64,000 nt of DNA from Chlorokybus atmophyticus (taxonomy: Eukaryota; Plantae; Mesostigma and Chlorokybus algae), in assembly GCA_009103225.1 (NCBI GenBank), contig RHPI01002533.1, positions 1,555,186-1,619,185 on the forward strand. Reading direction: 5' to 3'. How positions within the stretch are numbered: position 1 is the stretch's first letter; the number at the start of each line of letters is the position of its first letter. The translations under genes and the position numbers were made by a program. The notes below the pieces were generated by a model, which saw only the letters and a list, made by a program, of their open reading frames with translations, ran no database searches and was not told where the DNA came from. Positions 4,960 to 62,200 of this stretch are shown in pieces.

Positions 4960-7444
<2,485 letters not shown>

Positions 7445-35347: not shown

Positions 35348-36793
35348 ACAAAAGCCCACACTTAGTTTCAGCGCAGCAAGGGTTGCTGCGCGATAAGTGT
35401 AACAAAAAACATTTTAGTGCATTCATTGGTTGTAAGTACATGGCCTTCGTCATGAGCTGGTAGCTTAAACCTTGAAAGTCGGCTGGTTGTTATGACAACC
35501 GCAAGGCGTGTTGCCTGTTGGACAATCACATAATCCGCTGCTGGTGATACGCTGCAATTGGTGATGCATAGTATTGTGTGAACATCTGGGGCAACTTGCC
35601 ACCGGCCGCGATTACAAGGTAGGTTGTAATATGCTGAACATAATGGAGTTCCATTGTGCCCGTTATGCCGAGAACCGCAACATGCACACGCGTATCACTG
35701 CTGCTTGTGCACGTGTGCTGGTTGGCTTGCTTGGGCACGCTTGTTTGTTTGCTTGCATGCGTGCTATGCATTTCCCTACTTGCTGTGCTTGCTCGCCTGC
35801 TTACTGGCCTAGCACTAATTCTTGCTGCGTGCCTGCTGGCATCCCCTACTACGAACACCTGCGTGCCCATGCTGTGTTTGCTTGCTGGGTGTTGTTAGTT
35901 GCCAGTGGGTTTGTGTTGTGCGGTGTTGGGTTGGGTCACTATCAGTTGTGCTTATGCATCTTTTGTGCTCACACACCACGCAATCGACTGCGCAACTGCA
36001 TCGTGGGTCAGAGGCAACATCCTCAACCAGGGTTACGGCGACCACATCACATGGACTCGTTTAAATGACTCGTGCATGCATGCATGCGTGCGTGCATGTA
36101 TACGAGATGCTCTGGTATACATGATTACCCCGACTTGGCATATGCCCATACACACTCAGTCGCTGTGTACGAGGTGCTGTATCATAATTGCTCCAGATGT
36201 GTGTGCGAGAATACATTTTTCCTCTACTTTGCACATACAACCTGCCGTTACTCTTGGAATGCAGTAGCTCATCCGCGATGAAACGCAAGCAGCATGCACT
36301 TACACAATCTGGTGGCACAGCGCGTGGGGCATGTGCTTCAATGTTGACATTGTCCAGAGTTTATCGATGTAGGTTTGATAGCGCTGGCATAAGCATGAAA
36401 TGGCTGCAAACGGTCACAGTAAGGGACAAATATCACAGATCCAGATAATTGAGCGTTTACGCATAACCCTACATTTGGCAGGCAGTGCATAAACCAATGA
36501 CACAAGACCGTACCAGAGTGAGCAATATGCAGAGTATAAACCCACATTACAGGCACAACACAAATGTGTCAACATTACGGTGCAGCGGCATGGCCAGCTG
36601 AGCCTAGCTACCCAAGCTCTGTGCCATGCCACTTGCCAGCAGCTTGAGCTACCAAAAATGAAAGTACAATCATAATGAATCGCTACATTACAGCAGAGCT
36701 ACTCCTATACAACCCGTGGTGCAATTGCACCGCACTTTTGCAGTTACAAATTACATCTTGTAGTGGTACACTACACCGGCCGGTGTGCATCGC

Positions 36794-39372
36794 CTATTGC
36801 ACGCAGCGCGGTGAATCTCCCTCTTTTTCGCCATTGATGAGCCGCTTCACGCGCGCATACACTGCGTCGGCGACCTTAGCACCGATGACCCTGCCTTGAA
36901 TGTCACTAACGTGGATGTGAATGCCACCCATGAGACGGGACTCGCCGGCCTGGTCAGCCATCTCCCTGAAAGAAGTCCATTGCAGCGTGACCGCCTTTTT
37001 GGGCGAGTAGTTGTTGGTCGAGTTGTAGCGTGGGTTTGTGGAACACGCTGTGGGAATGCAAGGCAGACCGTATGCATTGAAGCCGTCTTTGCAAAGGGAT
37101 TCCCAGGGAATCCCACCAGCTGGCATTGTGTATCCGAAACTGCCCTTAAGGTTTGCTGGGTTGGATGGGATTGTGGACAGACCAGTGAACAGCTCGAGTG
37201 CATCAGCCGCAGCTCTGCTGAAAGTGGAGTGGCCAGAGACGTACTCTGGGAATGGTGGTGTGATGACCTTAGGAGACTGGTATGGTTGCCAGCTCGTGGT
37301 GCTGATGTCGCCAAAGGGGCAGTAGGGACCGCGATACTGGTGCTTGAGTCGTGTGGACGTCCCATTGACAATGCCGGAAAGCACCATTGGAATGTAGGTG
37401 CAAGGACGCACGGTCTCATAAAACCGCTTGGTGTCCCAGGCAGCCAGACCAGCATCGTAGAGGGAGTTTGCCACCAGGAAGAGCATCTGCACGGACTCAT
37501 CCAAGCTCTGGCACAGGCGTCGGCTCGTCTCACCAGCCAATCTCTGCATTGCAGTTTGCACTTTAACAACAACGCCCAGCCAGAAAACTACAACTGTACA
37601 GGACTCCGCGAATGAATGGTCAAACATAGTGAGGCACTTACCATCCAGTGGCCAGGGGGAGTAGGTGTTCCAGCACCGTCAAGCCAGTAAACAGAAATAA
37701 CCTTCAACAGGTCTCCATTGTCTGGGAGAGAGCTCTGAATGACAGTCAGCTGTGCAAACTGTAGGGCCAACTCATCAGCTGTGGGCGGCACTGGTGCACG
37801 GAAGGCTGATGCAGTGGGCATCGCAAAAGGTTGCGCAGTGGCGGCTTGCGGCATGGTGAACTGCTGGGGCTTATCAACACGACCAGGGAACATGATGGGT
37901 TGCCATTGGAGCACAGACCTTGTGGCCGCGGCATCGGCAGTAAGCATGGAGTCGTTGCCAAGCACGCACACATTGTTCACAGGCATGAACCATGTGTTGT
38001 CCTTGTAACAGCCCTCCTGGTTGAAGCCGTCAACAAGCATCTGATCGTGCAACAATTTTGTGACCTCCGTAATAGCACCATACACAGCATCCCCTTCATG
38101 ACTAGCAGTCACATTGATGTGGAACATTTCCCGGATGCTACGAGCCACACCGCGAACCTGTTACGCATAGATTGCGTGTGTTAGCCACCAACTCTGCAAC
38201 TATCACTGTTCACATGTCTTGCTGCTCGTGCTTCCAGTTTGCATGCACGTCGAGGTCAATGCAAACACATGCATGCGTACCTCAACAGCCTGTGGCAGCA
38301 AAAACTGCATGGTTTGGTATGCAGCGAGTGCAATGGCGTAAGTCTTGATGTCCTTGGTTCCTTCAGCTATGGGAGTCTCAAGGAGTCCAGGTAGCTCAAC
38401 TGTTGGGTTTGCTCGGCCGTTGAATAGTGTCCAGGCATTGTACATGGCAGTAGCAACCGCCCTATAAGCGCGTGCAGCGCTGATAGGAGAGTACATGCCG
38501 GGGCCGAGCCCAGCCAAAACACACGGCTGCGTGACATTCAAGGACTCTGCAGCAACCAAGTCGAGTGCCTGCGTGGTGACAATGTATAAGCACGAGTGCA
38601 CATATCCAATCACTATCGCCACTCAAGACTGTCAATGACCAGTTAATCTTCAAACCATGCTGTCACTTGGTGCTTGCAGTATGCTTTGTTGGGTATGCAG
38701 TGGCAACGTCACACTACACATCACGACCTACCAGTCGCAGGAGAATATCTGGCGCTGTGCGTGCACCATTCTCACACCCTGTTTCAAAGCACTTTCCCCT
38801 CACATTGTTGCCCCATCTACCTTCAGCCCAGCAAGCGCGCGACACCTGCAAGTTGAGCGACGGGTGAGTTGATTGAAACAACTTGTGCGACTGTTTTGCA
38901 CATTGTCGCAACTCATACGAGCATGGGAGTCATCCATACTTTCACAGAACCTGCTGACAAGCTGTGGCTGAAGGAGCATATGCTGCTTGCGCTACGTACT
39001 CGTACTGTGCATTGTGCTTGCAATGCACGGTGGCGACATTGTGCTCGTTATCCTACCACTGGTCAATGACCAAATCTTACGTGGTCTCATGCTTATGGTG
39101 CAATATGCTGTCAATTCAAGCACACATAGGCAGACCGTTAAGCCTTGCTGACTGACCACAGCACACCCTGCTGCCCCAATGCACCAGCTCACCTGTGCGG
39201 TCGAGTTGTGCGGACACTGCACTCGGACGCGCAGTTTTCCCTTCTGTGGTGCAAGTGTGGCTGGCCACTTGACGCCGTGGTACTCCTCCGGCGGACATGT
39301 TCTTTGAGCGCAGCTGTGAGCCGCTTGGAACGCTAGTGAAGCCAGCACCAAAGCTGCCGTCAAGCGCAACAT
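36794..39372 (-). CDS. Secreted vanadium-dependent haloperoxidase (PAP2/VHPO superfamily) with Cys-rich N-terminal module
   Basis: Exons 39372-39193, 38845-38732, 38568-38281, 38158-37642 and 37543-36794 are in phase. Signal-like MLRLTAALVLASLAFQAAHS. The three vanadate-binding motifs are WDTKRFYETVRP, FPEYVSGHS and ESRLMGGIH. PPGHW is also present. The 5' end may extend to ~39950. Confidence 0.88.
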
Positions 39373-40255
39373 CCTGCAGCACAAGAAACACATACTGAAA
39401 TATGCAACGGCGGTAAACCAACAGCACAACAAACAAGCAGGCGAGTAAGCCGCCTCAGCAGTTCTCCACCGCTGAACGTGCTTGTCGCAATGCCCTGGTA
39501 TGCAAACAGCGATGCAAGCTTGACTGGCTAGCTTGTGCTGCCCGTGCGCTCTATCAACCTCACAAACACGTCTGCTCAAAAGCCTTAACAGTATGACCAG
39601 CTGGCTATTCCTACAGAGACCACACAGAGCAGCATACAACAGCTGCGCTCACTACACAGAGCTCTGCCATTCTGCAGTACAGCAGTGCATGAAGACCACC
39701 ATGCCGCGATCGCCTTACGACACAAGATGCACAGCCTCACCTGCTCAAGCGCAAGCCTCTCCGCGCTCCTGCGACTGTGGTGGTCGTGCTCGTAGTCGGC
39801 GGCGGCGTCGGTGTGCCTGCCGTCGGTGTGCTTGCCGCCGCCTTTATCAAGAATGGCGGTAACAACTGACTGGCGAGTCACCAGTGCAATGCTGCAGTGG
39901 TGAAAAGCAGCAACTACCGAGACTCCAATGATCACTCTATTTCCAGAATCCAACCGTTTGTCTTTGGTGGTTTTTTCGCGTCATCGTACGGGCATCAGTT
40001 GGCGGGGGTTGCTCCGGCCGGTAAATCAACCGATCCTGGGTGTGGGGTCGATTGGTTAAACATGTCACAACTGATGACGTGACACCTTTATCGGAAAAGA
40101 TTTCACGGCCTAGCGAAAACCTTGTATGCGGCAAGTCGAGGTTTCGCTTGCGGTCGACACGTGGCGGCAGAGCACGTCGGCACTGACGGCAGTGCTGTCA
40201 CGGCGTACTGTCGGCGGGCAGTCTGCGGCACACTGTCTGCCACCCGCTACGCACC

Positions 40256-40473
40256 GTACAAAAGCCACGTTGCCAGTGCTGCTTTCCATGCTGGCAATGT
40301 GTGCTGAGGACAGTTGCCGTTTAGACTAATTCAAATGGTTGGAACATAGGCTGCATGCTGCAGTGCGTCGTACGAAAGTCACGTAGCCAAATGCTGCCTT
40401 TCCCTGCTGGCAATGTGCGGGGGACAGTTGCCATTTAACTAGATAGATGGTTGGAACGTGCTGCATACTGCAG
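40256..40473. repeat. Two diverged tandem copies, period ~114 bp
   Basis: gtacaaaagccacgttgcc...gacagttgcc...atggttggaac...ctgcag at 40256-40363, repeated at 40370-40473. Confidence 0.8.
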
Positions 40474-43602: not shown

Positions 43603-46600
43603 TTACCGTCCGCGTCTGGACACAGTACTCCAGTACCCCCGAAAAATCTCTTGGCAGTTGGTAAGATTCCTTTCGGGCTCCCATGTATTGTGCTCAACAC
43701 TATACCCTTTTCATTTCACCAAGTAAGACGGCGCGCGTCCGCGTCGAGGCTTACGATAACTCAGGATTGCTTCCACCACATACTCAAAAGTATCATCGCC
43801 ATCCACTGCAACGGGGGGTGGAGGAGGTTGAACCCGACCGACAGAAAGGTACGGTTTCAGTACACTCACATGAAACACATTGTGAATGCGTATCGATCTC
43901 GGCAAGTCCAAACGATACGCGTGAGTGCCGACCCGATCAATCACTTTAAAAGGGCTTATCCAGCAAGGGAAAAACTTGCGGGTACCCACTCCCTTGATGG
44001 ATATGTTTTTGGTGCTGAGAAGCACCGAAAAGCCCACATCGTAGTTGGCCTCTGTACGATGCGCATCAGCATGGGCTTTTTGTCTGTCTTGCGCTGCGCG
44101 CAGCCAGTCCTTTGCCAATGCTAACCTATCCTGCATGGCCGAAGCCATCCCGCGCGCTGCAGGTACGCGAGTTATGTCGGTAGCGAGCAACTTAATGTTT
44201 GCAGGACTCAGTGGATGCACTCCATAATTCAAGAAAAACGGAGTTTCCTGCACACTCTCTTGCCATGCATGCTTAATCGCGGACTCAGCCATTGGGAGAT
44301 AAACATCCCAATCAGATTGGTTCGGACTCACATGATGCCGGATGGTTTCCTCAATCACGTGATTGGCGCGCTTTGTCTGACCATCCGTCTGTGGATGGTA
44401 AGCTGTGCTCATGTTCTGGTGAATATGTAAAAAGCTGCATAGCGACTTCCAGAACTGAGCTACAAATTGCGGATCGTGATCGGATACGAAGTTACGAGGC
44501 AAGCCATGTAACTTAAACACAAAGGCGACAAAAACCATCGCTAACTCATGGGAGCCTATTTCCGTGCGGCAAGGGACAATGTGAACCATTTTTGTTAAAC
44601 GGTCCACAAAAACTGCACCCGCAGTGTGTTCTAATGCTGTCTCCGGGAGCTCAAAAATTAGATCCATACTCACACTTTCCCACTTGCCATCAGGAACAGG
44701 CAAAGGTCGCAGCAACCCAGCGGGTTTTTGACGTAACGGCTTGTCACGCTGACATTTGTCACACGTGTCAACATCATGCTTCACGACAGGCAACGATAGC
44801 CACCAGTACAACTGTTGCGCTGCCTTAATAATCTTGCGACCCCCAAAGTGCCCAGCATACGGTGGATTGTGTACTTCAGCTATGCATTTCATGCGTTACC
44901 CAGCATGGTCAGGTATCACCAAGCTGGCGCCCATATATTACAAGTTGTCTCTTTTGTTAAACTTTTGTACATTCTCTTGTATAGAGAACCATAGGTCTAA
45001 TGCATACCCCTGTAAAACAGCTTCGACAAACTCATCATCAGGAGGCAATGTACCCTGCGTTGCAAGCAACTGCGCACGCATAACTGCCAACAATGACGGA
45101 CAGCGACTCAGAGGATCTGCCACGTTGGTCCTGCCCGGCCGGTATACCCATTCAAAGGTAAGCCGCGACAGGAACTCATTCCAGCGAGCTTGCCTACGCG
45201 ACATGTTTAGCTGTGTTTAGAAGTACACCAACGGGTTGTGATCGGTCACCACTGTGAACTGAACTCCCTCCAAGTAACATCGCCATGTTTCAAGAGCATG
45301 CACTATACCAAGCAATTCCTACTCAGTGGTAGTGTAGTTCACCTCTCCTGGGATGAATTTCCTACTCTCATAAGCACATGGTCGGCCATTCTGTAGCAAT
45401 ACTGCACCACACTCAAGGGTGGAGGCATTGTTTATCACAGTGAAGTGTTTATCCCAATTTGGCAATGCCAATACTGGTGCCGAAGTCAAAGCCAGCTTCA
45501 CTTGTTGCATAGCAGCTTCTTGTGCTGCTGTCCAAGAGAATGGGGCAGCCTTTCGCAACAGTTTTGTCAAAGGCACCACAACTGTAGAGTACCCCATCAT
45601 AAACTTGCGAACATAGTTGGCCAACCCCATAAATGATCGCAACTGATGGATACTCTTAGGTTGAGGCCAATCTTTTACCTTTTACTTGCACTTTGCGAGG
45701 GTCAGGTTTGACACCCGCTCCACTCACAATATGCCCTAAGAATGGCAACTGTGTCTTGCCAAAGTCACACTTTGACAAGTTGGCAAACAAGCGATGTGCT
45801 TGCAGTCAAGCGAGCATCGCTTCTAGTGCCTTTTGTGCTCTTCTTTTGTTTTACTGAAAGCAATAATGTCATCCAAGTAAACCATAACATGCTTGCCCAG
45901 TATATTACCAAAGATTTTATTCATTTCCTTCTGAAACACCGCAGGTGCATTTCTCACTCCAAAAGGTAACACTTTGTACTGATAATGACCTGAAGGTGTT
46001 CTAAATGCTGTCTTCTAAACATCAGAAGGGTGAATACGGATTTGATGATAACCGCTTGTCAAGTATAGCGTACCAAATTACGCATTCCCCGACAGCTTAT
46101 CAAACACATCATCAGTCCGTGGTAACGGGTATCGATTATTTATCGTGATCTTGTTCAAAGCACAATAATCTACACACATGCGCAATTTCCCATTCTTTTT
46201 CATCACAAACAAAATGGGTGCGCCAAAGGGTGACGAACTTGGTTCAATCAGACCCTTCTCCAACAACTCCTTGATTTGAGTTTCCATTTCCCCCCTCTCA
46301 TTTGGGTTGAGCCTATATATAGGCTAGAACAGAGGTTCACTATCAGGAAGTAATGGTATTGTGTGTCCGACACCTCGATCAGGGGGTAAGCCTGGCAACT
46401 CATCTGAGAATATGTTCTAATATTCTCAATGATGTTTGCAACACCTTCCGTACTGCCTGGCACAAAGCCATCAGACGACGTTACGTGCACAAGGAAAGCC
46501 GGTGTGTTTGTACGCAACGCATGCTTCACTTGCATTGCGGTGAGAAGCGCGGGGTCAGATTGCTTATGTACCAAGCTATAGGACCCTCTCACAGACAGCG

Positions 46601-47367
46601 TCACTCGCTTATGACCCTTTTTCACTGTGCACAGTTGTGCACCAGTATCCAATGTCATATTGACACTTTCCTGCCATTCCTGTCCGAGTACCACATCAAC
46701 ACCAGTTATGTTGATGGACACCACTATGAAGGCGAGGTCGGCATGATAGCTACCAATCTTTACCGTCATTTAACTTCTCCTTTCACTGGCAACGTACCCC
46801 CAGCACCGGCAGCTGAAAATGCTGAGGGTTTACACGCTACTTTATTGCGCACAACCCATTGTTCCTCAATAAAGTTGTGTGTTGCACCAGTGTCAATTAA
46901 GAACGAACTGGTTATCCCTTGCATTGTGCCACTTAATGTCCACAACAGAGGTACAACCGTCCTTGAAAAGTAGCCAAGAGTCCGTGACCAATGCGAGGGT
47001 TGAGTAAAATTGCTGACAATCGCACTATCCATGTTTCACGCTTGCTAAATTGCTTCAACACAGTTCCCCCTCAAGTGTGTTTCAACCATGAGCCATGATA
47101 TTTAGGCACCATCACTACCACACTTAAGGTTCTGTGCTTACTTTGCAACTCAATCAAAGTGTGCAACACATTGGTAAGCATGTTAAACTCCACATGTACC
47201 AACACACAAGCATTCTCGTCCACCTTTTCAACATCAAAAAGTGGCAACCTGCTATGTGCTTGCTATGCATGCGTCATTACATGCACTTGGGACAGCTCAT
47301 TAAACCAGTTTGCTACTAGTACAAGCAACTGGTTATCAACCAATTCTACATCAGTCACGGCGTAATC
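43603..47367 (-). pseudogene. E1 pol (extra N-terminal domain, protease, RT, RNase H, integrase, chromodomain); multiple stops/frameshifts
   Basis: FLIDTGATHNF protease, LRMCVDY and YLDDII RT, CAYESRK RNase H, H-H-C-C zinc finger, WESVSMD and YHPQTDGQT integrase, GPY/F region, and chromodomain EYVVEAIL...YLVK*KGY...NTWEPERNL. Confidence 0.95.
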
Positions 47368-48843
47368 CTATTCAACCTTCTTGGCCTTGCCCTTCCCCTT
47401 GATTGGGCAGTTGTTTGCGATGTGGCCAGGCTGATTACAGACGTAACAGGTGCGAGCAGCAGCAGGCATGGCACCACCAGCAAATGCGCCACTGGTAGAA
47501 GCACCAAATGTCTTCACCTTCTTTGCCAAGTGTGCACTCGGATGAGAGAAACGCTTTCCTCCCACCCCCGGCGGCTTGGCCGAAACTGCCACATGTGACT
47601 TGTCCTGCACCGCCGTGTCATCATTGTACACGTACACGCTCAGCTTCTGCAGCTTGGCCAAGTTCTCTGGAACCCAAGGAAGTCCCGTTGCCGTGTTGTA
47701 CTGCAGCTGATCATGCACACGCGCATCCAAGCCGCGCTTGTACAACTCAAGCTGCTCGGCCTTGTCCATAGGCATGAGGCCGCTGTTTGCACGACCCACC
47801 AATGCCAAAAACTCCTGCAGATAGGCTGAGGCCGCCCGACCATTCTGGCGCAACTTGCTGAGCTTGTTGCGAGCTTGAGTAGCCGGGTCCATGCCACCAT
47901 AGCGTTCCATCAGGAACTGGTAAAGTGCCTCCACTGTCTTGGCAGCACCATCTTCTGTCCGCCTCGCCCATTCGGCGAGAGCATCAGATGGCATGAGCAA
48001 CTCAGCAACAGCAATGTGCTCATTAACCGAGCGCTTGAGTGCCGTCAAGTAGTGCTCGACAGTGACCACCCAGTCGTGAATGCTGACGCTGCCGTTAGGC
48101 TTGAACTTCTTAGGCTTGTTCAGCGCTGTCACCGGCAGACCTGCTGATGCCCCAGCTGCGGAAGTAGCCCCCACCACTTGTTGCCGCAGCGCCACCAACT
48201 TAGATTGCATCGAGTCGAGGCAAGCTGCCAACTTCACCCGAGCAGTTAACTTGTTCTCCAAGTCAAGCCCCAAGTATCAGAACACATCCTTGCAGCGTTG
48301 CTGGGTTTCTATCATCAAGTCGGTCAGAGCCTCAAACGCCAAGCGGTTCCCTTCGTACGGGGGTGGCTTGCCGTATATGGCCATGAGAGCAGCCACCTTC
48401 GAATCACCACACACGAATGGCGGAACATTGTTCGTCAACTTGTGCTCAAGCATGCGGATCACAAACTCCTTGCTTGCGCGAGGGAGTGTACCAAAGTCCG
48501 TCTCATAGCCATCATGAACAGTCTGAGCCCATGCATCCCATGTTTCCTTACGAAGCTGTGGGTGGGCATCAAGCAGAGCTTTACGCCCATCTGCATACTT
48601 CTTAATGGCCCCGCCAATGACATTGTGAGTGTCCACTACAGCTGGTGCAGTGTGAGTGTCCACTGCAATTAGTGCACTCTGAGAAGACTGGTCAGGCAAA
48701 GCATCGCTGTCTTCCTTGTCTTCTTCTTTGTCACTGATAGTAAGCTTATAGCTTTCACTCGTGTCAGAGTAGTTCACTTCCTCTTCACTCGATGGCTCAT
48801 ATGATGTGGACTTCTCCACATCATCCCCTCCTTGGTCAGACAT
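47368..48843 (-). pseudogene. E1 gag with long N-terminal extension and CCHC knuckle; one internal nonsense codon
   Basis: ORFs 48843-48277 and 48273-47368 are one frame broken by TGA, where E2 has TGG. Zinc knuckle CYVCNQPGHIANNC. Ends at TAG 47370-47368. Confidence 0.9.
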
Positions 48844-49722
48844 CTGCCAAAGAATACAAGCCGTCAATAGTAGAATTGTGCAAGTGCACAAAACACACAA
48901 GTTGTGCACTGCAAAAGTGTTAAAATGTATAGATTTTGTCTCGTCAAGTTTCAAGTGCTTAACGTGGAGTATTCAGCTTAGACAAGAGCTCTCCACACAC
49001 CTTTCATCTAGACACTCACTCTGAACCAGACCGCACGCGGCGGTTCACAAGTTACAACTTGTCAAAGTTTTCACTTTGTACAACTCAGTTCAACCCACAA
49101 TTGTAATTGACACACAGGGTGCCAAAATCTCGTTGAATCAATCTTACAGGCTGATATCAGCAAGTTGTGAGTTGTGAGTTTAATATCGGCAGCACAGAGT
49201 GACTCTGGCGGCCTCACCGCACTGACTGGCGGTAACGGCAGCCGATGTTGCCACCGAATTGCCTTACAAGGGTTGGTTTTGTGAATACAATGTCACACCC
49301 TTCACACCACCACGAATCCACGTGGTGGCAAGCACACAAGCACAAGCACAGTAATGTTATCACAATAATGTGATCACAAGTGATGTGCTGCGCATGCAAT
49401 GCTTGGGGGATAGGCTGCCTGAGTGGTCGCCTTCCCCAACAGCAAGCTAGGCTAGGCTAGGCTAAGGCAGCTAGGCTGCGCTACGCTAGCAGGCAAGCAT
49501 GCAAGCTAACTACACCAGCAGCAGCGTTTAACTACTACAACAACAACAACAACAACTAACAACCACCACTACCCACCGTAGTGGGTAGCGGCTGCTAGTG
49601 CCGCCTTTGCCGCCGCTGCAGTCGCTGCCGCCTAAGCCCGCCGCCTGCCGCTGCTGCCGCCTCTGTGCCGCCAGAGCCGCCGCCCCTCCCACAGGCCCTC
49701 GCCGCCCTTGCTCCGATACCAA

Positions 49723-56492: not shown

Positions 56493-57933
56493 ATGTCTCA
56501 CCAAGGAGAGGAAGGAGGGATGTATCCCGTACCTGAGGATTCATCCTATGAGCCATCGAGTGATGAGGAAGTGAAGCACTCAGACACGAGTGGTGGTTAC
56601 AGGGTCAGTGAGGAGGAAGAAGCCAAGTCCAAGAGTGGTGAAGCTTCTTCAAAGAAATCCTCTCATGATGACCAACCTATGGACGCTCAGAGCATCATCG
56701 GGGCGGCCATAGCGAAGTACGCATCAGAGCGTGAAGCTCTTCTTGCTGCACACCCCCAGCTTCGCAAGGAAGTGTGGGATGAGTGGGCGCAGCAAGTCCG
56801 TAATGCATACGAGACGGACTTCGTGGCACTCCCGCGCGCAAGCAAGGAGATGGTAATTCGCATGATCGAGCACGAGTTGACGCGTAATGTACCGCAACTC
56901 ATGCGCACAGATCCGGCAGTGGCCACTCTTATGGCTACTTATGACAAACCAGGCCCGTATCCAGGCCAGAGGATGGCTTTCGAGGCTCTCATTGACGGTG
57001 GAAACTCAAAAGCGTTGCAAGGACCTCTTCTGGTACTTAAGGCCTGAGCTGGAGGAGAAGTTAGCTCGAGAAGAGCGCTTGACTGCACGCCTCGATGCTA
57101 TGCAGTTCGAGTTGGTGGCATTACGCCAGCAGGTGGCCGGGGCTACCACAACTGTAGCAGGGACATCAGTTGGCCTACCCGTCATAGCGCTGAACAAGCC
57201 CGAGAAGTTCAAACCCAATGGGGCTGTGAACATTCATGATTGGGTGGTGAATGTAAAGCGCTACTTGGCTGCACTTCAGCGACCAGTTAGTGAGCATACA
57301 TCTGTTGCTGAGTTGCTCATGCCACCTGACGCTTTGGCCGAGTGGGCGCGTCAAACGAAGGATGGTGCTTCCAAGATTGTGGAGGCATTCTTTCAGTTCT
57401 TGGTGGAGCGCTATGATGACATGGACCCGGCTACTGCTGCTCGCAACAAGCTTACCAAGCTGCGACACAATGGTCGGGCGGCTTCAGTGTACTTGCACGA
57501 GTTTCAGGCACTTGTTGGCCGTGTTAACAGTGGGCTCATGCCCATGGACAAGGCTGAGCAGTTTGACCTGTACAAGCGCGGCTTGGATGCGCACTTGCGC
57601 GACCAGTTGCAGTACAATATGTCGATAGGGCAACCTTGGGTTCCCGCGGACCTCGCAACCTTGCAAAGGTTGAGTGTGTAACTGTTCAATGACGATGCTG
57701 CGGCTGTGCAGGACAAGTCACAGGTGGTGGCTTCAGTCAAGCCACATGGGGGAGGAGGGAAGCGGTTCCCTCCACCAAGTGCGCATGCCGCGAAAAGGCA
57801 AAAACCTCACTACGCACCTGCGAGTTGTGCTACGCCTATTGCAGCACGCGCCTGCTACGTGTGCCATTAGTCAGGTCACATTGCAAAGAACTGCCGAACC
57901 AAGGGAAAGGGCAAGGCCAAGAAGGTTGAATAG
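56493..57933 (+). pseudogene. E2 gag (frameshift ~56995, further stops, broken CCHC knuckle)
   Basis: Collinear with E1 gag. A ~5-nt deletion at AFEALID, CYVCH*SGHIAKNC, and an end at TAG 57931-57933. Confidence 0.9.
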
Positions 57934-58875
57934 GATTACATCGTGACTGATGCACCTTCATCTAGTGGCCAATTGCTAGTGTTACATGCAGCAACGTCGC
58001 AAAATGTTTCCCCAATCGGCCGACTAAATATTGGCAACGGCCGTGCACCTGAGGATACTCAGCTAGACTGTCGTGGCTCAGTCCACCTGTAATCTCGATA
58101 CAGACACCTGAGTATAACTTCCGTTACTATCGGGCCCTAACCGTTACAATTTAGTCCCTATTAGGTGACTGTGCGTAACTAACAGGTGCCTGTTAGTTAC
58201 GCACCGGCAACTGTATGATAACTATGCTCGACTGTCAGGCTGGTCAATTACACAGTCACTTTCAGGTACTTATGCGTAACTAACAGGCAATCGTACGCTG
58301 CCTAAGCGTGACTGACAGGCACCTCATGGTACCTGCCATTATTGATGTGTACCTTAGAAGGTACCTATTGGTACCGTTCCATCATGATTAGGTACTACAC
58401 GTGCGTGTCATGCTGTGAACGTGATTATGGAAAAACACATATGATAATATAAAGTTAGTCTGTTACAATTGTAACGTTGCTATGCGCAATGTAAACTACA
58501 CTAAGCTACAACAAGTACCTGCAGTAGTAGTCTACCACTACTACTGCAACTATCCTTATACTATTCTTCATCGCCGCTCCTCCTCCTCCGCTCCTGCGCC
58601 GCCGCCGCCGCCTGGCCTGGTCGGCCTGGCCTGGTCGCCATGAGGCAGCAAAGGCGGTTAGCTTGAGCAAACAACACAACGTCATGACACACAAGCAAGC
58701 TTACCTCGCCATCGCCGCCGCCTCTCACACTGCGCCGCCGCCGCCGCCTGGCCTAGCCTGGTCTGGTTGGTTGGTCTAGCCGCCGCCCTGAGGCAAGAAG
58801 GGCGGTTGGGCTGCAGGTGTACTTGCGCACAACACAACTATAACACACAAGCGGACAGACTCACCTACTGTCGAT

Positions 58876-58906
<31 letters not shown>

Positions 58907-58927
58907 GCCGCAGCCGCAGCCGCAGCC
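58876..58927. repeat. (GCC)n/(GCAGCC)n microsatellite
   Basis: cgccgccgcc...gcagccgcagccgcagcc, directly visible. Confidence 0.95.
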
Positions 58928-58974
58928 CCTGCACAACGCTCAAGTCAAGTGTCCAACTTGAACATGACGGTGTT

Positions 58975-59293
58975 GAAGCCGTTGGGCGTTTGAATTGCCG
59001 AAGACACGATGGCACAATCGTACCATTACAATGGTACGATTGTGCCATTGCCACAATGGAAGCATCGTATTATGTCAATGGTACGTTAATTGCATCGTAT
59101 GATAGACTATCATACGATGCAATCAACTATCAANGAAGCCGTTGGGCGTTTGAATTGCCGAAGACACGATGGCACAATCGTAACATTGTAATGGTACGAT
59201 TGTGCCATTGCCACAATGGAAGCATCGTACTATGTCAATGGTACGTTAATTGCATCGTATGATAGACTATCATACGATGCAATCAACTATCAA
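58975..59293. repeat. 160-bp tandem duplication joined by a single N; each unit has two long palindromes
   Basis: Copies at 58975-59133 and 59135-59293, with N at 59134. Palindrome arms are 18 bp (loop 2 nt) and 17 bp (loop 1 nt). Confidence 0.9.
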
Positions 59294-62200
59294 TAATTCA
59301 TTGATACTCCCGACTTGCCGGCAGTACGCGGCGACAAATAGGAACTGCTGGTCACGTGCTTGTCAGTATAAGACCGTCGCCGAGCATAATGTGTCACGGT
59401 TAGGTGACGACCGACGTCGACCGGCACCACAAGTCACTCAAAGGCGACTTGCTTGCCACAACAGGCAGGCCGCCGCGCATACAACATGCCGGCTAGGCTA
59501 CGACCGACGGTCGGCCGTTACTATACATAATGACCAAAAGGTGATTTGTTTGCTACAAACAGCAGTCGCCACCGCGCAATGGCCGACCAACAATCGGCCG
59601 TTACTATAAGTGACCGAGAAGTGACTTGTTTGCCACAATAGGTAGGTCGCCATCTGGCACAATGACCGACCGGCGGTTGGCCGTCACTGTAAGTCACGTG
59701 CTTGCCATATTAGGCAGGCCGCCGTTGTATGTACCCATCGACCGTCGGTTGGCCGTCAACAACAGTCCACATTAGCCGACGGCAGACCCAACAGTTCAGG
59801 AGTGACATGTTAGGCAGGGTTGGGTAGGGTCAGGCACCCGTCAGTCCCTCAGTCCCTGGTCAGTCACCGTGCAAAATTTGCGACGAAACTGGTTTGATGA
59901 ATTGTCTCGTGTACATGTAATGACACATGCATGGCAAGCACATGATAAGCTACCACTTATTTATAGTGGAAAAGTGGATGACCAGGCTTGTGTGCTAGTG
60001 CATGTAGAATTTAACATGCTGGCAGACGTTTTGCGCATATTGTGTGAGTTATAAAATAAACACACGACACTGAGTGTGGTTGTCATGGTGCCGAAGTATC
60101 ATGGACCGTGGCTAAAGCATACTCGGGGGGGAACTATGTTGAAACAATTTACAAAGCGTGAGACGGGGACGGTGCGGTTGTCAGCAACATTGATTAACCC
60201 GCGCATTCGTCACGGAATCTTGGCTACCTTTCAAGGGCGAGTAGTACCTTTATTGTGGACCTTCACAGGCACGGCACAGAGTATCACAAGCTTATTCTTG
60301 GTTGACACCGGGGCAACGCATAACTTCGTTGAAGAAAAATGGGTTATGCGCAATAAGATAGCGTGTAAACCCTCAGCATTCTCAGCTGCTGGTGCTGGGG
60401 GTACGTTATCGGTAAAAGGTGAAATCAAGTTGAAAGTTAAGATTGGTAGTTATTAAGCCAGTTTATCTTTCATCGTAGTACCCATTGACATAGTTGGTGT
60501 TGATGTGGTATTTAGCCAACAATGGCAGAATCAAGTGTCTATAACATTGGATACTGCTGCACGGCTGTGCACAGTAAAGAAGGGGCGTAAGCGCATCACT
60601 TTGTCCGTGCAGGGGTCGCATAGCTTGGAATACAAGCAAACAGACCTTGCGTTACTTACGGCGCTTCAAGTGAAGCGTGCGTTATGTAAAAACACACCTG
60701 CTTTTCTAATGCACTTAACGTCGAGTGATGATGTAGTGCCTGGCAATACAACAGGTGTGGCGGACATCATTGAGAAATTTCAGGATGTGTTCTCAGATGA
60801 GTTGCCGGGCTTGCCCCTTGATCGAGGTGTCGGACACACAATACCTTTAATCCCTAACAGTAAGCCTCCATTTCGGCCTATATATAGATTGAGCCCTCGT
60901 GAGAGGGGGGAAATGGAAACATCGATAAAAGAGTTATTGAAAAAGGGATTGATTGAACCAAGTTCTTCACCCTTTGGCGCACCCATATTGTTTGTTATGA
61001 AAAAGAATGGGAAGTTGCGAATGTGTGTGGATTACCGTGCTCTAAATAAGATCACGGTACAGAACAGATACCTGTTGCCAAGGAGTGATGATGTGTTTTA
61101 CAACTTGTCAGGGAATGCGTACTTTAGTACGCTAGACTTGACAAGCGGCTATCATCAAATCCGGATTCATCATTTGGATGAATACAAGACAGCATTCAAG
61201 ACACCTACGGGCCATTATCAATACAAAGTTTTATTTTTTGGATTGACTAATGCCCCCGCTGTGTTTCAGAAGGAAATGAATAAAACTTTCGGTGACATGC
61301 TTGGTCAACATGTCATGATGTACTTGGATGACATCATTGTCTTCACTAAAACAAAGGAAGAACATAGGCAACACTTGGAAGCGGTGTTTGCAAGATTGCG
61401 CAAGCATCGTTTGTTAGCAAATCTCATCAATTGTGATTTTTGTAAAACGGAGTTGCCATTTCTTGGTCACATTGTGAGTGGTGCATGTATTAAACCTGAC
61501 CCTCGCAAAGTGCAGATTGTGAAAGATTGGCCCCAACCTCAATATCCATCAACTAAGGTCGTTTCTAGGGTTGGCAAACTATCTTTGCAAGTTCATGATG
61601 GGGTACTCGACAGTTGTCATCCCTTTGACCAAACTGTTGCGTAAAGATGCCCCGTTCAATTGGACAACAGCACAAGAAGTTGCTATGCAAAAGGTGAAGT
61701 TGGCTTTAACATCGGCGCCAGTGTTAGCACTGTCAAATTGGGACAAACACTTCACAGTGATCAGTGACGCATCAACACTTGGGTGTGGTGCGGTACTATA
61801 GCAAGATGGTAGACCTTGTGCTTAAGAGAGTAGGAAGTTCATTCCTGCAGAGGTGAACTACACTACGACAGAGCAAAAACTATTGGGTATAGTTCATGCT
61901 CTCGAGACATGGAGATGTTACTTAGAGGGTGTTCAGTTCACTGTTGTGACTGATCACAACCCGTTGGTATATTTCTCAACACATCAAAACTTGTCGAGGC
62001 GGCAAGCGCGCTGAAATGAGTTTTTGTCCAGGTTCACCTTTGATTGGGTGTATCGGGCGGGCAAAACCAATGTGGCTGACCCTTTAAGTTGCTGCCCGAC
62101 ATTACGAACGGTGGTGCACGCGCAATTACTCGCGTCACGCAGCACATTGTCTCCCCATGATGAGTTTGTGCAAACTGTTGTACAGAGGTACACTCTTGAC

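Follow-up and report, generated by a model that had tools for sequence, protein, structure and literature searches.

A transcribed, intron-containing gene for a predicted bacterial-type vanadium-dependent haloperoxidase in the streptophyte alga Chlorokybus atmophyticus

The 64,000-nucleotide stretch of Chlorokybus atmophyticus DNA analyzed here (contig RHPI01002533.1, positions 1,555,186 to 1,619,185 of the forward strand; hereafter the window) carries on its minus strand a gene of the vanadium-dependent haloperoxidase (VHPO) family, which comprises five coding exons totaling 615 codons and one further exon in the 5′ untranslated region (UTR). The start codon ATG begins at position 39372 and the stop codon occupies 36794-36796. 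It is an intact, transcribed nuclear gene for a probably soluble and secreted protein of the VHPO family, for which a haloperoxidase activity is predicted. An initial annotation had assigned the gene to positions 36794-38568; this span contains the last three coding exons, but two further coding exons and the 5′UTR exon had been missed, and position 38568 marks a splice acceptor rather than the start of the gene. The gene is composed of the following parts, in which X1 and X2 denote two public sequencing runs that are described below.

39741-39859, minus strand: 5′UTR exon without an ATG, defined by a piece of the X1 transcript contig and its junction; position 39859 is the end of that contig, and the real 5′ end possibly lies further upstream.
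39193-39373, minus strand: coding exon 1, one UTR base followed by the ATG at 39372-39370, 60 codons, defined by the X1 junction and by translation.
39313-39372, minus strand: signal-like peptide, codons 1-20, MLRLTAALVLASLAFQAAHS, read from the sequence as Arg3, 12 hydrophobic residues and AHS.
38732-38845, minus strand: coding exon 2, 38 codons, with junctions in X1 and X2 and defined also by translation; it contains the second part of a Cys/Trp module (38774-38845), after which the conserved region begins (APDILLRL).
38281-38568, minus strand: coding exon 3, 96 codons, in which the N-terminal helical bundle (DUF6851-like) starts.
37642-38157, minus strand: coding exon 4, 172 codons, which completes the N-terminal bundle, continues with the interconnecting region, and ends at its C-terminal side with YWLDG....PPGHWM (PPGHW at 37645-37659).
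36797-37543, minus strand: coding exon 5, 249 codons, containing the C-terminal catalytic helical bundle (VCPO_2nd).
36550-36793, minus strand: 3′UTR, 244 nt, extending to the end of the X1 transcript contig; the X2 contig starts at 36529.

The five introns (minus strand: 37544-37641, 38158-38280, 38569-38731, 38846-39192, and 39374-39740) all have GT..AG borders, and each of the four coding introns is in phase 0. Four public runs contain matching sequence, and their contigs were aligned to window positions 36300-40300. Run X1 yields one spliced contig of 2,212 nt that has no mismatch to the window and skips all five introns exactly, while run X2, which belongs to a different study, covers two of the five splice junctions. 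X1 and X2 are presumed to be RNA libraries, since only mRNA can yield spliced contigs; in run X3, the pieces run through the introns and represent genomic DNA. The clean in-phase introns anticipated by the initial annotation are therefore borne out by a spliced transcript, and expression, which it had proposed as a check, is seen in two studies. The signal-like N-terminus that it had mentioned is also present, but the corresponding piece of exon 1 falls outside the span to which the gene had been assigned. The full-length product is absent from a collection of 15 billion proteins, although Chlat1 proteins such as katanin are present there; a public model of this gene is probably missing or wrong.

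Sequence searches, domain scans, and fold prediction were run on single exons of the gene. Exon 5 alone matches the Pfam family VCPO_2nd (PF22778) with 34.1 bits (E 3.5e-8; cut-off 27), and an exhaustive HMMER search with exon 5 against 1.84 billion cluster-representative proteins retrieved 929 relatives at E<=1e-10, the highest identity being 51%; together, these two results exclude a chance similarity of the sequence. Exon 3 alone scores 18 bits against Pfam DUF6851 (E 0.004), which is below the cut-off of 27, and it matches the 418-aa bacterial DUF6851 + VCPO_2nd protein P0014 at 4e-8 in BLASTP and eukaryotic homologs at 34-44% identity. The NCBIfam scan gave no match for any exon. Exons 3, 4, and 5 align in order to P0014, and the predicted product has a two-bundle DUF6851 + VCPO_2nd architecture that is colinear with the bacterial proteins. 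For exon 4, phmmer with the exon alone found nothing in the PDB, and a profile built from alignment A2, which covers this region and in which D160, G161, P167, P168, and G169 are invariant, retrieved the VHPOs 9l8x (2.7e-25) and 9ptr (2.3e-23).

For the catalytic bundle, a profile search of the PDB retrieved VHPOs only, among them esVHPO (9e-36), XhnO11 (1.9e-32), NapH3 (2.1e-30), NapH1 (3.6e-25), the vanadium iodoperoxidase (VIPO) of Zobellia (3.4e-22), and the vanadium chloroperoxidase of Curvularia inaequalis (CiVCPO; 5.6e-9). The AlphaFold2 model of exon 5 (pLDDT 91.8) gave a similar order in Foldseek, namely NapH3 (5.5e-10), XhnO11 (1.4e-9), NapH1 (6e-9), Zobellia VIPO (5.5e-5), and VCPO (2.7e-4), with TMq values of 0.65-0.69 for the NapH/XhnO11 VHPOs, 0.53 for Zobellia VIPO, and 0.49 for Curvularia VCPO. 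The set of DUF6851 + VCPO_2nd proteins is overwhelmingly bacterial and the best solved relatives are bacterial VHPOs, so that the description of the family as bacterial-type in the initial annotation is sound. On the other hand, the sequence does not indicate a close relationship to the algal-type vanadium bromoperoxidases (VBPO) and VIPO of Ascophyllum, Corallina, and Laminaria, which match with profile E-values of 5e-4 to 1e-3 at motif 3 only and with Foldseek E-values of at least 0.026.

The predicted active site is made up of three motifs in exon 5, which the initial annotation had listed together with PPGHW. All of them are present on the minus strand, and neither an alignment of 12 homologs (A1) nor one of 45 (A3) shows any variation at these positions. 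In the following lines, full-length residue numbers were obtained by adding the lengths of the preceding exons to the last-exon numbers.

37403-37429, minus strand: motif 1, K-x6-RP, with Lys405 and Arg412; Trp402 is three residues before the Lys.
37229-37237, minus strand: motif 2, SGH in PPFPEYVSGHS, Ser469-Gly470-His471; Phe464 is five residues before the Ser.
36917-36940, minus strand: motif 3, SR-x5-H, Ser568-Arg569-x5-His575, the His being predicted to bind vanadate.

In last-exon numbering, the invariant residues of both alignments are Trp36, Lys39, Arg46, Pro47, Phe98, Ser103, Gly104, His105, Ser202, Arg203, and His209. Trp402 and Phe464 are found at the positions of CiVCPO W350 and F397, which we take to be residues of the halide pocket, and Zobellia VIPO has PPFPEYTSGHS at the aligned site and a WDxK motif whose Trp is likewise aligned. 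The three motifs correspond to Lys353, Arg360, Ser402, His404, Arg490, and the vanadate ligand His496 of CiVCPO (PMC10278073), and the set of vanadate-site residues is complete. In esVHPO, a Lys-Ser dyad (K329/S429) carries the haloamine, Lys329 being the halogen-carrying residue (10.1101/2025.10.24.684477). In the window protein, the counterpart of K329 is the Gly of YWLDG, which is invariant, and that of S429 is the His of SGH. Judged by these residues, the protein lacks the dyad of the site-selective NapH1/esVHPO class, and its site is of the SGH type.

The most likely chemistry suggested by these residues is a vanadate- and H2O2-dependent oxidation of halide to free hypohalous acid (HOX). 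After export of the protein, His575 would bind vanadate, H2O2 would form peroxovanadate, and the latter would oxidize halide to HOX. Acid-base catalysis would fall to His471, by analogy with Curvularia VCPO and Zobellia VIPO, which are also of the SGH type. Because the Lys-Ser dyad of NapH1 and esVHPO is absent, a release of diffusible HOX would be likelier than site-selective halogenation. The protein has no C-terminal hydrophobic tail and should therefore be soluble; in the mucilage of the alga, HOX would serve antimicrobial defense, matrix cross-linking, or peroxide removal.

Several points weigh against this assignment. No characterized enzyme of the exact subfamily, defined by YWxDG...PPGHW together with a Cys-rich insert, was found, and the presumed activity is extrapolated from relatives at ~20-25% identity. 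The domain, search, and fold evidence comes from separate exons of the 615-codon gene, and the putative signal peptide was judged by eye. Furthermore, Chlorokybus is terrestrial, and halides are scarce on land. The remaining points bear on a serious rival, namely that the secreted product would use the PAP2/VHPO fold for something other than halogenation, for instance as an acid phosphatase that scavenges phosphate outside the cell or in a NapH3-like reaction without halide. The vanadate-site residues (the Lys/Arg/Ser-Gly-His/Arg/His set) are those that PAP2 acid phosphatases use for phosphate, NapH3, which is the best structural match in Foldseek, is a VHPO homolog that does not halogenate, and some bacterial relatives are named “phosphatase PAP2 family protein” or “phosphoesterase.” In addition, VCPO without vanadate (apo-VCPO) has phosphatase activity (PMC4859513). 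Against this stand the score of Pfam PAP2 (PF01569), which at 10.1 bits is below its cut-off of 27.2, the lack of any acid phosphatase at E<=1e-3 in the PDB profile search with the catalytic bundle, and the poor Foldseek scores of PhoC-type acid phosphatases (TMq 0.35-0.41 and E>=0.05, compared with TMq 0.65-0.69 for the NapH/XhnO11 VHPOs and 0.53 for Zobellia VIPO). Moreover, the Trp and Phe at the WDxK and PPFPEYTSGHS positions of Zobellia VIPO are invariant. The catalytic bundle is thus predicted to have a VHPO-like fold that is closer to solved VHPOs than to acid phosphatases, and the protein, with two predicted bundles, differs from class A acid phosphatases, which match PF01569 and consist of a single bundle of ~230 aa. 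A phosphatase or other activity on the same fold therefore appears somewhat unlikely, and a haloperoxidase is preferred.

The closest relatives of this predicted haloperoxidase are eukaryotic. The best labeled matches to exon 5 come from Pellita catalonica (Amoebozoa, EP01090_P003643; 51% identity), Ambispora leptoticha (Glomeromycota, CAG8553113.1; 46%), and Endostelium zonatum (Amoebozoa, EP01088_P004010; 44%), and further close relatives are located on eukaryote-like contigs, where the neighboring genes encode U-box, 7tm_1, and LRR_TMOD proteins. Altogether, these nearest eukaryotic relatives show 42-51% identity, whereas the best named bacteria among 185,579 species genomes show 33-38%. 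An IQ-TREE analysis (81 rows, 226 columns, site-heterogeneous model) placed the window protein and 19 others in one clade with a support of 100/99 and a long stem. Within the clade, the window protein is sister to the remaining 19 (support 94/69), and the two Amoebozoa do not group together; the next sister of the 20-row clade is a group of eight unlabeled, eukaryote-looking sequences. With a divergent bacterial protein as the root, the clade falls within the bacterial sequences, although the backbone support is weak. A FastTree analysis had indicated a long-stemmed group containing Acidimicrobiaceae as sister (support 100), which was not recovered under the site-heterogeneous model of IQ-TREE; this placement is treated as long-branch attraction, and no bacterial donor is named. 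A search of the ESM Atlas yielded bacterial clusters of VCPO_2nd and no others. One bacterial protein of NCBI/ENA, P0127, was rejected as a product of this genome, since tblastn shows only 28% identity to the window; it comprises 1,415 aa with two full DUF6851/VCPO_2nd units in tandem and a beta-rich tail after each.

Two further parts of the predicted protein, both rich in cysteine, distinguish it from the bacterial homologs.

39193-39312 and 38774-38845, minus strand: N-terminal Cys/Trp module, absent from every homolog seen.
37001-37108, minus strand: Cys-rich insert between motifs 2 and 3, ~36 residues including three cysteines, WESLCKDGFNAYGLPCIPTACSTNPRYNSTNNYSPK.

The insert is common to the eukaryotic clade and absent in bacterial homologs, as seen from a gap against P0014, from alignment A1, and from a regular-expression survey, and all members of the 20-row clade whose sequence was read contain both the insert and a GPYCP-type cysteine. 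The N-terminal module follows the signal-like peptide, spans ~64 residues of exons 1 and 2, and contains six cysteines in the arrangement WP...CP...RxCWxxGxW. In total, the mature protein would contain 16 cysteines and 7 N-glycosylation sequons. A comparison of the N-terminal exons one by one with Pfam HRM (PF02793) gave no match even at E<=10, the module straddling an intron. In the broadest reading, the module could serve to anchor the enzyme in the mucilage or to direct it there.

The positions of the introns differ from those of the relatives as well. Three genomic homologs have either no intron or one at a different place, and none is shared with the window gene. Because no genomic homolog examined shares their positions, the four coding introns appear to be private to the Chlorokybus lineage. 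A homolog at L001:9145-11074 lies on a eukaryote-like contig beside U-box and 7tm_1 genes and has its own signal peptide; its only intron follows ...CFADTTNFR, which corresponds to the middle of an exon in the window gene. An ENA metagenome contig that belongs to the unlabeled sister group harbors two intronless VHPO-like genes of 582 and 565 aa (L083:1311-3059 and L083:6001-7698), which are 3 kb apart and adjoin PhyH and cytochrome b5 genes.

The initial annotation had suggested a possible horizontal acquisition. The bacterial character of the family is consistent with this proposal, but the nearest relatives are eukaryotic, and a direct transfer from a bacterium to Chlorokybus is unsupported. 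The best-supported explanation is that the eukaryotic branch entered from bacteria at some time and is now patchily distributed; the sequence data are consistent with an earlier arrival in eukaryotes, after which copies were lost or were passed from one eukaryote to another. We infer that the bacterial family gave rise to the eukaryotic clade and that the copy of Chlorokybus, whether acquired or retained, has been there for a long time, since the four private coding introns and the lack of a close relative suggest an old age. All labeled members of the clade are non-green, with most members having no taxon label and the root being weakly supported. Thus, the gene is integrated in the host genome and belongs to a eukaryotic branch of a bacterial-type family, a branch for which there is apparently no earlier description.

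It is also conceivable that the gene descended vertically from an old eukaryotic gene that was lost many times, with no transfer into the green lineage. The clade spans Amoebozoa, Fungi, and Streptophyta and has the eight eukaryote-looking sequences as its sister set, and the window protein branches first within it, as would be expected from such a history. However, the two Amoebozoa do not group, no genomic homolog shares the intron positions of the window gene, and the protein-collection searches found no other member from the green lineage, although proteins of land plants, Chara, and Klebsormidium are present in the collection; this last absence is weak evidence, because most clade members are unlabeled, the product of the window gene is itself absent from the collection, and the comparison was at the protein level only. 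Vertical descent is therefore considered unlikely. A direct and fairly recent bacterial transfer into the Chlorokybus lineage is quite improbable. It would account for the overwhelmingly bacterial membership of the family, for the window protein being the first branch of the eukaryotic clade, and for the nesting of the clade among bacteria under the bacterial rooting, but it conflicts with the lower identity of named bacteria, with the three-Cys insert and GPYCP cysteine that only the window protein and the eukaryotic clade have in common, and with the strongly supported clade and its long stem; the five introns and the lack of a close relative anywhere argue that a transfer was not recent. 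Finally, the probability that the gene is a contaminant or an assembly artefact derived from bacterial or other foreign DNA is negligible, because its only support is the bacterial look of the family, whereas five spliceosomal introns are spliced out in the transcripts of two studies, unspliced pieces occur in the DNA run, and the gene shares its 64-kb piece with katanin and IF-2 genes of the host as well as with retroelements of host type.

An older entry of the branch into eukaryotes is the history preferred here, and the view of the initial annotation that the gene is intact and integrated in the host genome agrees with the introns, the transcripts, and the linkage to katanin. The katanin open reading frame (ORF) of the window (5663-7441, plus strand, 593 codons) is 99% identical to the EukProt entry jgi/Chlat1/288/Chrsp1S03177, and its next-best matches are from land plants, Chara, and Klebsormidium. 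This identifies the host as C. atmophyticus, a streptophyte green alga. The 99% identity of this katanin p60 ORF to the Chlat1 model spans only 66% of its length, so that either the long ORF includes one or more in-frame introns or the public model differs. On the upstream side of the haloperoxidase-family gene, a cluster of retroelements occupies 43711-44892 (minus strand), 46353-48954, and 56887-61644, and includes a Ty3-type integrase with an SH3_Tf2-1 domain as well as gag and RVT_1 ORFs. The gene had been described as the last intact one before this cluster, and indeed there is no gene-like ORF between 39.9 and 43.7 kb of the window, that is, none of at least 90 codons up to the integrase ORF at 43711. 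The GC content at third codon positions is 0.60 in the haloperoxidase-family gene and 0.70-0.72 in its neighbors, which is uninformative.

Among the known proteins, the homologs of Pellita, Ambispora, and Endostelium, which are 44-51% identical in the catalytic bundle, resemble the window protein most, having a signal peptide, the three-Cys insert, the GPYCP cysteine, and the two-bundle layout; however, they lack its N-terminal Cys/Trp module, and several relatives have a hydrophobic C-terminal tail or other N-terminal extensions, unlike the window protein. No characterization or description of these three homologs was found. The bacterial DUF6851 + VCPO_2nd proteins, which PGAP names “vanadium-dependent haloperoxidase” and which include P0140 of Capilliphycus salinus and proteins of Acidobacteriota and Chloroflexota metagenome-assembled genomes, are colinear with exons 3-5 and share YWxDG...PPGHW, K-x6-RP, PPFPEYVSGHS, and SRxxGGIH with the window protein, but at 33-38% identity and without the Cys-rich insert, the introns, and the N-terminal module, and they are uncharacterized. 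Solved structures are available for the best profile and fold matches, esVHPO (9PTR), NapH1 (3W35/3W36), NapH3 (8CXL), and XhnO11 (9L8X); relative to esVHPO, Lys329 and Ser429 are replaced by Gly and His in the window protein. The VIPO of Zobellia galactanivorans (PDB 4CIT), a marine bacterium, likewise has the SGH-type sequence PPFPEY(T/V)SGHS and two helical bundles, but it is only ~21% identical and has FWDCNP...RGHLM in place of YWLDG...PPGHW. Curvularia inaequalis VCPO is also secreted by a terrestrial eukaryote and has the same vanadate ligands, whereas its N-terminal bundle is different (VCPO_N), its identity is ~15%, and its fold match is weak.

A VHPO of a bacterial family in a eukaryotic alga is not without precedent. 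Bacterial-type vHPOs of brown algae have been ascribed to acquisition from bacteria (10.1101/2024.02.19.579948), and for red and green macroalgae sampled in the field, transcripts of putative Zobellia-type vHPOs have been reported, including one of B. plumosa, taken here as Bryopsis (PMC13198595). Many of these brown-algal and macroalgal proteins have signal peptides, but their hosts are stramenopiles or marine macroalgae, none of them streptophyte or terrestrial. No literature linking Chlorokybus with haloperoxidases was found. In this sense, the gene represents a known kind of enzyme in a new and phylogenetically interesting host.

It may tentatively be proposed that no earlier VHPO of the green lineage has both genomic and transcript support. 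The protein would then be the founding member, on the green side, of a hitherto undescribed clade of bacterial-type haloperoxidases, secreted and braced by disulfides, that extends across eukaryotes and includes amoebae, arbuscular-mycorrhizal fungi, and unnamed protists. The label “bacterial-like” hides the eukaryotic history of this gene. The eukaryotic clade with the Cys-rich insert appears to be uncharacterized and offers new enzymes for biocatalysis. With this gene, a terrestrial streptophyte has a candidate enzyme for halogen or oxidant chemistry outside the cell. If the proposal is true, an alga that branched off among the earliest relatives of land plants would carry out an enzymatic chemistry of hypohalous acid at its surface.

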